Assembly (NCBI GenBank): GCA_964035545.1
Contig: OZ037767.1
Location: forward strand, 17,667,781-17,731,780
Origin: Bugula neritina
Taxonomy: Eukaryota > Animalia > Bryozoa
Direction of reading: 5' to 3'
DNA: 64,000 nt
Shown here: one piece after another, positions 3,101 to 9,100 of the stretch
Layout of the letters: the number at the start of each line of letters is the position of its first letter
How positions within the stretch are numbered: the stretch's first letter is position 1
Notes under the pieces: model-generated
Database searches by the model: none
Seen by the model: the letters and a program-made list of their open reading frames with translations, nothing else
What the model was told of the DNA's origin: nothing
Translations under genes and position numbers: made by a program

Positions 3101-6100
3101 AACTCCCAGTCTGACCGAGACGAGTCAGCGTCTAGTAGCGGCCAATCAGCAGAGTTCTGTGGCCGGCACTGAGCAGGCAGCGTCAGCTGATAACATCACT
3201 AGACAGATCAAGAGTGTGAGTGACTCACTGAGTAACTGTGTACTACTACTCACTGTGTACTACTCACTGTGTACTACTCACTGTATACTACTCACTGTAT
3301 ACTACTCACTGTGTACTACTCACTGTGTACTACTCACTGTGTACTACTCACTGTGTACTACTACTCACTGTGTACTACTACTCACTGTGTACTACTCACT
3401 GTATACTACTCACTGTATACTACTCACTGTATACTACTCACTGTATACTACTCACTGTATACTACTCACTGTGTACTACTCACTGTGTACTACTCACTGT
3501 GTACTACTCACTGTGTGCTACTCACTGTGTACTACTCACTGAGTACTACTCACTGTGTACTACTCACTGTGTACTACTACTCACTGTGTACTACTACTCA
3601 CTGTGTACTACTCACTGTGTACTACTCACTGTGTACTACTCACTGTGTACTACTACTCACTGTGTACTACTCACTGTGTACTACTACTCACTGTGTACTA
3701 CTACTCACTGTGTACTACTCACTGAGTACTACTCACTGTGTACTACTCACTGTGTACTACTCACTGTGTACTACTCACTGTATACTACTCACTGTATACT
3801 ACTCACTGTGTACTACTCACTGTGTACTACTCACTGTGTACTACTACTCACTGTGTACTACTCACTGTGTAGTACTCACTCTATGATATTCTCGCAGGCT
3901 GCGGAGTCTGTTGCTGAGAAGATGATGGACTTATCTCAAGCCGCTGCAGACGTCTCTCTGGACTCTACGTCAGTACCGAGTAAACCAACAATGACTAGTG
4001 CTTGTGAGTTGATTTCTACACCCTAGGTTATTATGTCAGTGTGTTATGTGTGACATGTGTACTCTGTGTGTGTGACATGCTACTCTGTGTGTGTGACATG
4101 CTACACTGTGTGTGACATGTTACACTGTATGTGTGACATGTGTACTCTGTGTGTGTGACATGCTACACTGTGTGTGTGTGTGTGACATGCTACACTGTAA
4201 GTACAGCTGTAAGTACAACTGTAAGTACAACTGTAAGTACAACTGTAAGTACAACTGTAAGTACAACTGTAAGTACAACTGTAAGTACAACTGTAAGTAC
4301 AACTGTAAGTGCTGGTATTTAGTCACGACTAACAACAAGAATCAGCTGCCAGTGCCGACCGCAGAGGCAGCAGTGAACGAGGAGGAGGACGAGGAAGTGC
4401 AGTGGGCGGAGTGGAGCTCGCTGTCTGAGGAGCAGCTGTACAGACGGCTGGCAGAGAGGGCAGCCAAGAGAGCGAGTAGACCTTCTGTCACCAACAACAA
4501 GCAGCAGTCTACTGGTCACTCCACAGGTCAGTTTACAGGTCACTCTACAGGTCACTCTACAGGTCACTCTACAGGTCACTCTACAGGTCACTCCACAGGT
4601 CACTCCACAGGTCACTCTACAGGTCAGTTTACAGGTCACTCCACAGGTCAGTTTACAGGTCACTCTACAGGTCACTCTACAGGTCACTCCACAGGTCACT
4701 CCACAGGTCACTCTACAGGTCAGTTTACAGGTCACTCTACAGGTCAGTTTACAGGTCACTCCACAGGTCAGTTTACAGGTCACTCTACAGGTCAGTTTAC
4801 AGGTCACTCTACAGGTCACTCCACAGGTCAGTTTACAGGTCACTCTACAGGTCAGTTTACAGGTCACTCCACAGGTCACTCCACAGGTCACTCTACAGGT
4901 CACTCTGTCTAATCTCAAGTCGGAAACCAGCAGACGTGCGAATGCAGTTGTAGACTTAGTTCTATTATATAGCAAGATATTTCCTTCAATGGAGATGCAG
5001 CGATTGTCTCATGCAATGAGTCATTACTTGCCTGATTAACTTCCTGTTACTTCAGCCAATGAGAGTTAGTGATGCAAATAAATAATAAATATCACTTAGA
5101 AAGGTGGTGGTTTGGTGTGAGTGTACTTTATTCAATAGGAATTTATTGAGTAATAGTAGTTATTGACTGTCTAGCTGTGTATGCAGGTCGTCATTTCTAC
5201 TCTATTCCTTCTTCGTCTCACAGAAAGATTTCCCTGAAACATAATATGGCAATTCAATATCTAATAGTACTAATACAGCTAGTACTATTAGTACTAGTAG
5301 CACTACTAGTACAGCTAGTACTACTAGTACAGCTAGGACTACTAGTACAGCTAGTACTAGTACTAGTAGTACCACTAGTACAGCTAGTACCACTAGTACA
5401 GCTAGTACTACTAGTACTAGTAGTACTACTAGTACTAGTAGTACTACTAGTACAGCTAGTACTAATAGTACAGCTAGTACAGCTAGTACTACTAGTACTA
5501 GTAGTACTACGAGCACAGCTAGTACTACTAGTACTGCTAGTACTACTAGTACTAGTAGTACTACTAGTACAGCTAGTACTCAATCTAGCAGTGTGTTGCT
5601 ACACTGTATCCACTCACCAGGTCTGACAAAGAAATCTCTTTTTCCAACAAGTGTCTGCTCGGGCAGCTCATGTATGCGGGGCAGCTGTGGCAGGGGTTCG
5701 GGATAGTAGATACACTGTGTACCTGGCTCACAGCCACACGAGGCAAAGTCGGGGTAGTGACAGCTCGTCCCGTTCCTAATGTAGTCAACACACCTGCCTG
5801 CAAACACCAGCAGATGCTAGAATAGGGGGTTGGGGGGGGGGGTTGAATATTCACCAGGCAATGGCCGGTTACATCACATCTTCTAATGTGAATAACTGAG
5901 TATACGTGTCATACCTTTGGGTCTCTCTGCTATTTGCGGCTCCAGCACCTCTCTTCTGCTTACCACAAAGAATTTATATTCATCCACACAGCACTGTTGG
6001 GGTGTGCAATCATCATCCACTTCACAGTAGATGTATTTATCCTACAATATCACAGTATAGTATCACAGTATACTATCACAGTACTACAGTATACTATCAC

Positions 6101-9100
6101 AGTACTACAGTATACTATCACAGTAACACAGCATACTATCACAGTAATACAGTATACTATTGCAGTAATACGGTATACTGTCGCAGTAATACAGCATACT
6201 ATCACAGTAATACGTATACTATCGCAGTAATACGTATACTATCGCAGTAATACAGATACTATCACAGTAATACGGTATACTATCACAGTAATACAGTATA
6301 CTATCACAGTAATACGGTATGCTGTCGCAGTAATACGGTATACTGTCGCAGTAATACGGTATACTGTCGGCAGTAATACGGTATACTGTCGCAGTAATAC
6401 GGTATACTATCACAGTCATACAGTGAGTGAACAACAAACCTCTGCAGTTGCTGCAATAACTGCTGTAATAAGCGCTAGTAAGACTGTCCAGTTCATGCTG
6501 CTGTGTGTTGATGACTAGTAAACTGCACTGTGACAGGTGGTGACAGGTGTGCTGGGAGCTGACACCTGTCGCCCTGTCACCATGCCAGACATAGTCTTCT
6601 ATTCAATGCCCTTCATATAAACTATGTTTGCTTTGGAAGATTACAAATCACTACCTTGTCCAATATGTAGTCCAGTATGTGAAGCTACCCAATGTACATT
6701 TCTCATCATTCAGCTGTCTGTATCCATATCAATAGTTACTATAGTGAATCAGAGTCATAACCCAAGTCTGCTATGTACAGGTCAGACTGGCAGCAATACA
6801 GGTCAAGGTCAAGGTGGTTCCATGAGCGTCAGCGTGCCAAATCTCACCTCCAGCCGACAGGAAACCATGAACTTACTCGAGTCTTTCGCTAATCTGGCGA
6901 GCAGAAACTTTGGGTGTAACAACAAGTCTCAGACTACAGCCTCTACACTTCTCCGGGCTCTTAGCAGTAACAGGGCTTCTACAGGTAGTGTATTCTACAG
7001 GTAGTGTATTCTACAGGTAGTGTATTCTACAGGTAGTGTATTCTACAGGTAGTGTATTCTACAGGTAGTGTATTCTACAGGTAGTGTATTCTACAGGTAG
7101 TGTATTCTACAGGTAGTGTATTCTACAGGTAGTGTATTCTACAGGTAATGTATTCTACAGGTAGTGTATTCTACAGGTAGTGTGTTCTACAGGTAGTGTA
7201 TTCTACAGGTAGTGTATCTAATGGCTGTACGTTTTAGAATCTTTGTTGAGTGCAGCACAAAGTTTCCCTAATCTGAACAACTCGGGCCGAGGTGCAGGTA
7301 ACAATCCGTCCTCCACTGGGCAGCGGCAGTCCAATGTGCTGTCTCTCTCTCAGACTATGGCCCTCTCTCTCACCAACTCCAGCGACAGCGAAGCTGACTT
7401 CTTAGAGTCGTGTCACGCTCAGGTGTGTAGTGACAGTGTGTAGTGTGTGTAGTGTATGTAGTGACAGTGTGTAGTGACAGTGTGTAGTGTATGTAGTGAC
7501 AGTGTGTAGTGTGTGTAGTGACAGTGTGTAGTGTGTGTAGTGACAGTGTGTAGTGTGTGTAGTGATAGTGTGTAGTGTATGTAGTGACAGTGTGTAGTGT
7601 ATGTAGTGACAGTGTGTAGTGTGTGTAGTGACAGTGTGTAGTGTATGTAGTGACAGTGTGTAGTGTGTGTAGTGACAGTGTGTAGTGATAGTGTGTAGTG
7701 ACAGTGTGTAGTGTATGTAGTGACAGTGTGTAGTGTATGTAGTGACAGTGTGTAGTGTATGTAGTGACAGTGTGTAGTGTGTGTAGTGACAGTGTGTAGT
7801 GTGTGTAGTGATAGTGTGTAGTGTATGTAGTGACAGTGTGTAGTGTATGTAGTGACAGTGTGTAGTGTGTGTAGTGACAGTGTGTAGTGTATGTAGTGAC
7901 AGTGTGTAGTGTGTGTAGTGACAGTGTGTAGTGACAGTGTGTAGTGACAGTGTGTAGTGTATGTAGTGACAGTGTGTAGTGATAGTGTGTAGTGTATGTA
8001 GTGACAGTGTGTAGTGTATGTAGTGACAGTGTGTAGTATGTAGTGAGAGTGTGTAGTGTATGTAGTGACAGTGTGTAGTGTGTGTAGTGACAGTGTGTAG
8101 TGTATGTAGTGATAGTGTGTAGTGTGTAGTGACAGTGTGTAGTGACAGTGTGTAGTGTATGTAGTGACAGTGTGTAGTGTGTGTAGTGACAGTGTGTAGT
8201 GTATGTAGTGACAGTGTGTAGTGTATGTAGTGACAGTGTGTAGTGTGTGTAGTGACAGTGTGTAGTGTATGTAGTGACAGTGTGTAGTGATAGTGTGTAG
8301 TGTATGTAGTGACAGTGTGTAGTGTGTGTAGTGACAGTGTGTAGTGTGTGTAGTGACAGTGTGTAGTGTATGTAGTGACAGTGTGTAGTGTATGTAGTGA
8401 CAGTGTGTAGTGTATGTAGTGACAGTGTGTAGTGTATGTTTCAGGCACTCCTAGAAGGTATCGAAGACGAACAACCGGAATGTGTTGAAGAGGAAGACGA
8501 AGAAGACGACGAAGACGACGAGGACGAGATGAACTTGGAGGATGACATGTACAATGAGCTGATGGTATATTCCCTTCTAGTATCTCCCTTCTATATGTCT
8601 CCCTTCTATATGTCTACTAGTATCTCCCTATTCCCTTCTATATGTCTACTAGTATCTCCCTATTCCCTTCTATATGTCTACTAGTATCTCTATATATCTA
8701 CTAGTATCTCTCTATTCCCTTCTACATGTCTTCTAGTATCTCTATATTCCCTTCTACATGTCTACTAGTATCTCTCTATTCCCTTCTATATGTCTACTAG
8801 TATCTCTCTATTCCCTTCTATATGTCTACTAGTATCTCTCTATTCCCTTCTATATGTCTACTAGTATCTCTCTATTCCCTTCTACATGTCTTCTAGTATC
8901 TCTATATATCTTCTATATGTCTACTAGTATCTCTATATATTCCCTTCTATATGTCTACTAGTATCTCTCTATTCCCTTCTATATGTCTACTAGTATCTCT
9001 CTATTCCCTTCTACATGTCTACTAGTATCTCTCTATTCCCTTCTACATGTCTACTAGTATCTCTATATATCTTCTATATGTCTACTAGTGTCTCTCTATT

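Follow-up and report, generated by a model that had tools for sequence, protein, structure and literature searches.

The stretch analysed here (hereafter the window) comprises 64,000 nucleotides (nt) of the forward strand of contig OZ037767.1 of the bryozoan Bugula neritina (GenBank assembly GCA_964035545.1, positions 17,667,781 to 17,731,780). Its plus strand carries exons coding for MIB_HERC2 and HECT domains, which belong to a HECTD1-like host gene. Within one intron of that gene, on the minus strand, lie four small exons that together code for a protein with ten cysteines. An original prediction had proposed this antisense gene, likening its product to prokineticins, astakines and colipases, and the host exons on the plus strand bear out the antisense nesting. 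We found that the nested gene is conserved in relatives, and it very probably codes for a genuine secreted protein of colipase fold.

When joined by a local script, the four exons gave 396 nt in frame, i.e. 131 codons followed by a TAG stop. They are 57, 127, 180 and 32 nt long (coordinates in Table 1), and all three introns have GT..AG borders, with phases 0, 1 and 1. Exon 1 codes for a 14-residue hydrophobic core (mean Kyte-Doolittle value 2.4) followed by A-T-A, as predicted of a signal peptide, and the next residues are E-D-K-Y-I-Y-C. The cysteines occupy residues 25, 31, 36, 37, 64, 74, 82, 84, 90 and 126, with the spacing C-x5-C-x4-CC-x26-C-x9-C-x7-C-x-C-x5-C-x35-C. An in-frame stop is present upstream of the ATG, and two AATAAA motifs, both kept in a related contig (L001, see below), lie within 75 nt of the stop codon, starting at 5147 and 5132 on the minus strand. 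Tandem Repeats Finder placed the repeat arrays 5268-5580 and 6065-6424 wholly within introns 3 and 1, respectively. In the list of open reading frames (ORFs) of the window, the nested gene is visible as fragments only. In all these respects, from exon coordinates, in-phase joining and ORF length to the signal-peptide exon, the downstream AATAAA and the position of the repeats, our analysis reproduced the original gene model.

With the ORF around exon 3 as query, two matching proteins were found among 5.8 billion. They are encoded on a 15-kb contig from a JGI symbiont metagenome (L001) and on a 2-kb ENA contig (L002). Both contigs have the same four exons, phases, GT-AG introns, open frames and ten cysteines. 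This exon structure, with its phases and all ten cysteines, is found again in a RefSeq gene of Watersipora described below, a recurrence well beyond chance, and the codon interrupted by intron 3 is identical in that gene, the window, L001 and L002. The coding sequences of the window and L001 are 93% identical, with 15 synonymous and 11 non-synonymous changes (ratio of non-synonymous to synonymous rates, dN/dS, 0.17; binomial P = 5e-5 for so few non-synonymous changes). As flanking and intronic DNA is also 86-91% identical between the two, nucleotide identity alone is uninformative, and it is the substitution pattern that holds the signal. In the comparison of the window with L002 (~55% identical), the proportion of synonymous differences (pS) is saturated at 0.77, and that of non-synonymous differences (pN) is 0.31. 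Long invariant blocks, including the exon-4 motif K-S-F-C-E-T, are shared by the window, L001 and L002. Thus, the nested gene is conserved under purifying selection, a property on which the original prediction had made its claim depend.

The nesting itself is also conserved. The gene of the Watersipora protein XP_067942721.1 lies antisense within a gene coding for a 2559-residue protein with Ank, Sad1_UNC, MIB_HERC2, BTHB and HECT domains, which is the architecture of HECTD1. Local tblastn showed that it sits between exons homologous to the two host coding segments flanking the nested gene in the window (Table 1). Since the flanking host exons are the same, both genes occupy the same HECTD1 intron, which answers the question, raised with the original prediction, of whether relatives share the nesting. 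In L001, too, the strand opposite the nested gene carries HECT and BTHB genes. At least two bryozoan lineages have therefore kept the nested gene in one HECTD1 intron, and shared nesting marks orthology among cheilostome bryozoans. The Watersipora HECTD1 intron harbours two more copies of the family (L010, 12078-12820 and 16940-17100), one of which has a paralog-type intron after C-G-C-E-P-G. HECTD1 nesting was also sought for two Lingula genes (P0007 and P0024) and for a second Watersipora gene (the paralog P0006), and none of them is nested there. As far as tested, nesting is thus not ancestral to the whole family.

Transcription was examined in assembled contigs of RNA runs, one of which (X1) is an RNA-Seq library of a 'symbiont metagenome'. 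The junction 5915/5797 between exons 2 and 3 is exact in run X4, where a contig of 296 nt crosses it and the shorter side spans 102 letters; the sequence spliced out has the plus-strand borders CT..AC, which correspond to GT..AG on the minus strand. The junction 6440/6041 between exons 1 and 2, also GT..AG on the minus strand, was found in one contig of run X1, with 27 letters on the shorter side, and the tool flagged it as weaker. Two of the three junctions were thus seen in RNA-run contigs, from two studies. As DNA cannot yield such joints, their GT-AG polarity establishes that the nested gene is transcribed from the minus strand. The proposal that RNA should join all four exons was hence upheld strongly for exons 2 and 3 and more weakly for exons 1 and 2, and the junction of exons 3 and 4 had no covering contig. 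The X4 contig extends ~29 nt into intron 1, so that its source was probably a transcript still in the course of processing. Run X4 carries the same organism label as X10, the DNA run that holds the window. A deep pile-up at 5270-5590, present in all four runs, was rejected as a sign of expression, since it corresponds to the low-complexity TAC/TAG repeat of intron 3. Its contigs number in the thousands, mostly show 90-95% likeness and fit two places, as a widespread low-complexity repeat does.

Table 1. Features of the nested gene, flanking segments of its HECTD1-like host and paralogous loci in the same genome
Feature	Position	Strand	Remarks
Exon 1, coding part (signal-peptide exon)	6440..6496	-	Donor GT at 6439; same exon in L001 and L002
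Intron 1, phase 0	6042..6439	-	GT..AG; filled by a 21-base-pair (bp) minisatellite, 6065-6424
Exon 2: Cys 1-4 (C-x5-C-x4-CC), then dibasic site 1 (S-R-R-E)	5915..6041	-	RNA-run contigs in X1 and X4
Intron 2, phase 1	5798..5914	-	GT..AG; exact junction in a contig of run X4
Exon 3: Cys 5-9 (C-x9-C-x7-C-x-C-x5-C), invariant block, long Pro-rich loop, dibasic site 2 (G-K-R-D)	5618..5797	-	
Intron 3, phase 1	5234..5617	-	GT..AG; filled by a 9/36-bp repeat, 5268-5580
Exon 4, coding part: tail with Cys 10, then stop	5202..5233	-	K-S-F-C-E-T identical in L001 and L002
3' untranslated region with two AATAAA	5127..5201	-	Both signals in L001 too
Probable 5' untranslated region and promoter	6497..6620	-	Putative function; region conserved in L001
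Host coding segment, one side of the host intron	4301..4516 (approximate)	+	tblastn to L010 17592-17359 (Watersipora HECTD1 locus)
Host coding segment, other side of the host intron	6771..6986 (approximate)	+	tblastn to L010 9328-9116, 83% identity
Paralogous loci L004-L009	C9:6427107-6433268, C9:6761495-6761587, C6:7837548-7841989		

Upstream of the nested gene, a TATA-like element, TTTATATG, is found near 6610, ~110 nt before the ATG, and is conserved in L001. Three CAGGTG/CACCTG E-boxes form a palindromic cluster at ~6530-6580 on the minus strand, 40-80 nt upstream of the ATG, and the 29-nt unit with these E-boxes is duplicated in L001 (7500-7580). Together, the TATA-like element and the E-box cluster may form the promoter of the nested gene.

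The introns of the host gene have a feature of their own. Over positions 1-16000 of the window, nearly every one of them is filled by a long minisatellite array, with periods of 2-36 bp and units that differ between arrays (e.g. 542-1273, 1439-2200, 3238-3900, 4047-4310, 4508-4906, 6977-7217, 7402-8448, 9900-11250, 11456-11900 and 12250-12800). Array lengths vary between the window and L001, and the unique intron ends are conserved.

The nested gene has relatives beyond its orthologs. A profile of three exon-3 peptides searched against 1.84 billion representative sequences retrieved 20 proteins. Full-length members from Watersipora subatra are XP_067942721.1 (142 residues, E = 6e-17), to which window exons 2 and 3 are 49% and 52% identical, and XP_067939389.1 (120 residues). 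The brachiopod Lingula anatina has three members of 114-116 residues. All named members are labelled 'uncharacterized protein' in RefSeq; the others, from metagenomes and read-archive assemblies, are fragmentary and unnamed, and a cluster look-up of ten of the fragmentary matches gave no organism names. The genome that holds the window (216 Mb) contains at least six further family loci, hence at least seven in all; contig 9 has a tandem of three and a further single locus, and contig 6 has two (Table 1). The contig-9 copies have all modules, both dibasic sites and a P-G-x-S-F-C-E tail. Their intron layout differs from that of the nested gene, in that an intron follows C-G-C-E-P-G and the last cysteine is preceded by none. 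Divergence is greater in the contig-6 pair, which has C-G-C-A-D-G-L-x-C. Tandem arrays of the family are present in the Bugula genome, Watersipora and Lingula. We conclude that the nested gene is part of an unnamed branch, with bryozoan and brachiopod members, of a known protein class. Another nested tandem cluster was observed in this second phylum: Lingula P0024 lies antisense inside a BTB-domain gene (L013 10001-20510) and is adjoined by at least four small genes with a CC...S-K-R module.

The ten-cysteine spacing of prokineticins is known from PK1, Bv8 and MIT1. The window protein has this spacing, C-x5-C-x4-CC...C-x9-C...C-x-C-x5-C...C, at all ten positions, in line with the original prediction. 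Its mature form would start with E-D-K-Y-I-Y-C, and no AVITGA N-terminus follows the predicted cleavage site in either the window protein or its homologs, so the reported lack of the AVIT motif stands. No match to Dickkopf_N (CRD1, PF04706) was obtained for the window exons or the relatives, and the 131-residue protein has a single ten-cysteine domain. Weak Pfam matches of the relatives to Nodulin_late, WAP, EB and others were disregarded as noise due to signal peptides and cysteines. A scan of the whole genome with PF06607 (Prokineticin) gave no match, but control genomes were silent too, so that this result is uninformative.

Structural evidence on the fold was sought in AlphaFold models of the Watersipora ortholog P0003 (XP_067942721.1) and the Lingula member P0007, each built with a 24-row family alignment. 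The mean predicted local distance difference test (pLDDT) scores are 72 for P0003 and 67 for P0007, with values of 85-92 in the cysteine core and below 60 in two long loops. The top four of 350,542 chains in a Foldseek search with P0003 were 3s2k_C (Dkk1 CRD2, E 0.16), 2jtk (Dkk2 CRD2), 3s8v_X (Dkk1) and 1imt (mamba MIT1). VIA-align, which is independent of Foldseek, also placed 3s2k_C first for this model (Z 5.1, root-mean-square deviation (rmsd) 3.2 A over 63 residues), followed by 2n8k (the MIT-like spider toxin U33-theraphotoxin), draxin 5z5k_B, Bv8 2kra and colipase 1eth_B. The P0007 model matched 3s2k_C with E 0.01, probability 1.00, Z 6.0 and an rmsd of 2.5 A over 61 residues; its further matches were 2jtk, 1imt, 3s8v, 2n8k, 2kra, 5z5k and 1eth. 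In a shape search of the ESM Atlas, nine of ten rows were prokineticin or Dickkopf clusters, and the tenth was unnamed. Language-model neighbours, taken as a lead only, were mollusc clusters of 131 residues, colipase, astakine (0.85), MIT_LIKE_ACTX and a cluster named 'aranetoxin'. Because two models and four methods agree, and nothing else competes, the five-disulfide colipase fold shared by prokineticin/Bv8/MIT1, astakine, Dickkopf CRD2 and colipase is a well-supported assignment for the modelled family. The earlier expectation of a colipase/prokineticin-like fold thus agrees with the models of these two relatives.

The hallmark of the family is a pair of conserved dibasic sites in enlarged, disordered loops, together with an RPGxSFCE tail. 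Site 1 (S-K/R-R, after the CC motif) is present in all 17 family sequences read, and site 2 (K-R, four residues, then R/K-P-G-x-S-F/W-C-E) in 23 of 25. Both are located in the two enlarged loops, the lowest-confidence stretches of both models (pLDDT <50-60), and the dibasic motifs are fixed while the surrounding loops vary. Site 2 reads G/S-K-R and is placed seven residues ahead of P-G-x-S-F-C-E; its G-K-R form is found in the window, L001, L002, P0003, P0004, P0005, P0009 and P0017.

These features suggest a maturation pathway. The signal peptide encoded by exon 1 would be cleaved and the product secreted, and the ten cysteines would form five disulfides of the colipase type. The colipase disulfide map, as known from MIT1, is C1-C4, C2-C5, C3-C7, C6-C9 and C8-C10. 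Enzymes of the furin or prohormone-convertase type might cut both dibasic sites; given that map, the pieces would stay linked by disulfides as three chains. In the HECTD1-nested orthologs, Gly-Lys-Arg would provide an amidated end to the middle chain. The mature molecule would then be an extracellular ligand of the prokineticin or astakine type. Judging from the motifs, convertase processing at the dibasic sites is conceivable, if somewhat short of probable, and we are similarly reserved about the predicted role as a cytokine or neuropeptide-type ligand.

How far these interpretations can be taken differs from one to the next. It is likely that a spliced four-exon gene under purifying selection, retained by at least two lineages in one HECTD1 intron, coding for a secreted protein and having the colipase fold, will prove correct in all these respects together. 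A more far-reaching proposal is that of a prohormone specific to lophophorates and derived from the prokineticin scaffold, in which two conserved convertase sites in two expanded loops would give a three-chain disulfide-linked ligand, with a maturation logic like that of insulin and with amidation in the HECTD1-nested orthologs. One member would have stayed in the same HECTD1 intron since before the split of Bugula-like and Watersipora-like cheilostomes, possibly through sharing, or depending on, the chromatin or antisense transcription of its host. We regard this proposal as speculative and, taken as a whole, rather unlikely.

Several observations weigh against the reading of the locus as a spliced gene for a secreted, prokineticin-like ligand. 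No RNA contigs cover 5162-5269 or 5594-5647, leaving intron 3 and exon 4 without RNA support; the last exon is modelled as it is because its motif and the position of the preceding intron are conserved in L001, L002 and Watersipora. Run X1 contains an unspliced piece across the border of intron 2 and exon 2, and one side of its intron-1 junction is short. In addition, the X1 and X4 contigs share five base differences in exon 2 (window 5914-6043), which are exactly the L001 alleles. The RNA therefore originates in a sibling lineage, which is ~7% divergent, and not in the genotype of the window, and one species name seems to cover two lineages that differ by ~7% in coding DNA. The evidence on the fold comes from models of orthologs or paralogs rather than of the window's own protein, and the structural scores are modest in both (Z 5-6, Foldseek E 0.01-0.16). 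Such scores are usual for disulfide domains of 60 residues. A profile search of PDB sequences gave chance matches only. Pfam, searched with the window's exons one by one, gave no useful match and none to Prokineticin. Among the relatives, P0023 (15.3 bits) and P0007 (13.9 bits) remained below the PF06607 cut-off of 21.6 bits, the others had no match, and the alignments depend on the signal peptide and are gone once it is removed. The Prokineticin match put forward as a check on the original prediction thus failed to appear, and the nested gene is not a member of PF06607. Finally, prokineticin-type G-protein-coupled receptors are reported lost in protostomes (PMC8557429).

The gaps in RNA coverage bring up the idea of a gene-prediction artefact or decaying pseudogene, in which chance ORF fragments would happen to join in frame. 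Exon 4 without an RNA contig, intron-1 splicing seen in one contig with a short side and the silence of Pfam on separate exons all fit it. They are set against three divergent sequences in which the four-exon structure is intact and the ten cysteines are conserved, a significant surplus of synonymous changes, a minus-strand GT-AG junction in an RNA contig and a RefSeq-predicted ortholog in the same intron of another genus. We consider this explanation effectively refuted.

Other alternatives accept the gene and concern the role of its product, for which we prefer an extracellular ligand of the prokineticin or astakine type. The product might instead be a Dickkopf-CRD2-like extracellular antagonist, whose single colipase-fold domain would bind a beta-propeller receptor, of the LRP5/6 type or another, and modulate Wnt or guidance signalling in the manner of Dkk CRD2 and the C-terminal domain of draxin. 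Dkk1 CRD2 bound to LRP6 (3s2k_C) is indeed the best structural match of both models, 3s8v_X, 2jtk and draxin 5z5k_B also match, and Dickkopf clusters dominate the Atlas shape search. However, crystal structures tend to outscore models determined by nuclear magnetic resonance (NMR), such as those of Bv8 and MIT1, so that rank within the fold is uninformative, and the Z values of Dkk, Bv8 and the spider toxin are only 1-2 units apart. With neither a CRD1 (Dickkopf_N) nor a Pfam Dickkopf match, and with conserved dibasic sites and Gly-Lys-Arg, which are features of prohormones and not of Dkk, we find such an antagonist improbable. We think it no likelier that the protein is a secreted defence or toxin-like peptide (antimicrobial, anti-fouling or anti-predator) whose genes multiplied for diversification. 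The structural neighbours U33-theraphotoxin (2n8k) and MIT1 (1imt), the MIT_LIKE_ACTX and 'aranetoxin'-named clusters from the Atlas feature search and the tandem expansion of the family are consistent with such a role. Yet the HECTD1-nested ortholog evolves slowly, as its dN/dS and long invariant blocks indicate, unlike fast-diversifying toxin or defence genes, and there is no venom apparatus context.

For bryozoans, a phylum missing from published spiralian neuropeptide surveys, the repertoire of secreted signals gains a verified gene and at least six paralogs. A sequence family is also defined here, one that escapes recognition by Pfam and is listed in RefSeq only as 'uncharacterized'. Its conserved dibasic sites offer a concrete hypothesis for the maturation of a prokineticin-fold protein. 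Antisense nesting in one HECTD1 intron provides a clean synteny marker and a small case of a long-lived nested gene.

We compared the nested family with known systems that share its cysteine frame or fold. Pancreatic colipase (1eth_B, 1lpa/1lpb) has the same fold class and is the weakest fold match (Z 2.7-2.9); in contrast to it, the nested family has no Pfam Colipase match and no lipase context. Dickkopf CRD2 and the draxin C-terminal domain (3s2k_C, 3s8v_X, 2jtk, 5z5k_B) are closer in structure, with Z 5.1-6.0, rmsd 2.5-3.2 A over 61-63 residues and 22-26% identity. Unlike Dickkopf, the nested protein has a single domain, lacks CRD1 and has no Dickkopf Pfam match. Arthropod astakines resemble the nested family in being secreted invertebrate proteins with a prokineticin-type cysteine frame devoid of AVIT. 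They differ in that no significant sequence match was found, the only link being a language-model neighbour score of 0.85, and the haematopoietic role and reported receptor of astakine are not transferable to the nested family. Vertebrate prokineticins, Bv8 and MIT1 (PF06607; 2kra, 1imt) have ten cysteines with the same fixed spacings (x5, x4, the adjacent pair, x9, x1 and x5), about six residues before the first cysteine and the fold predicted for the nested family. In contrast, the nested family lacks AVITGA and scores below the Pfam cut-off, and its Cys4-Cys5 and Cys9-Cys10 loops are 2-4 times longer and contain the conserved dibasic sites.

The nearest counterparts are the prokineticin/astakine-related precursors reported from brachiopods, phoronids, nemerteans and molluscs in the surveys of Thiel et al. 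2021 (PMC8557429) and De Oliveira et al. 2019 (PMC6425005), neither of which includes bryozoans. By inspection, these lophotrochozoan proneuropeptides resemble the nested family in combining a signal peptide with one ten-cysteine colipase-type domain that has C-x5-C-x4-CC, and they come from the same animal group, the lophophorates and other spiralians. Compared by eye, brachiopod precursors and one phoronid precursor (supplement of PMC8557429) have K-G-K-R soon after CC and end in P-x-G-x-x-G-x-C. The second dibasic site, the RPGxSFCE tail and the SCHxxGFxSCGCxPG block of the nested family are absent from the printed precursors. A literature search for bryozoan prokineticins or for nested genes in HECTD1 returned nothing relevant; in the literature searched, the subfamily, its dibasic-loop architecture and the conserved HECTD1 nesting are undescribed. 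The suggestion of an undescribed family thus holds for the subfamily, whose named members are all 'uncharacterized protein', and not for the class, which the two surveys had already reported. We assign the nested gene to the colipase-fold superfamily, where it stands closest to the lophotrochozoan 'prokineticin/astakine-related' precursors, a similarity judged by eye. The gene is a sound find within a known class and not a new kind of system.

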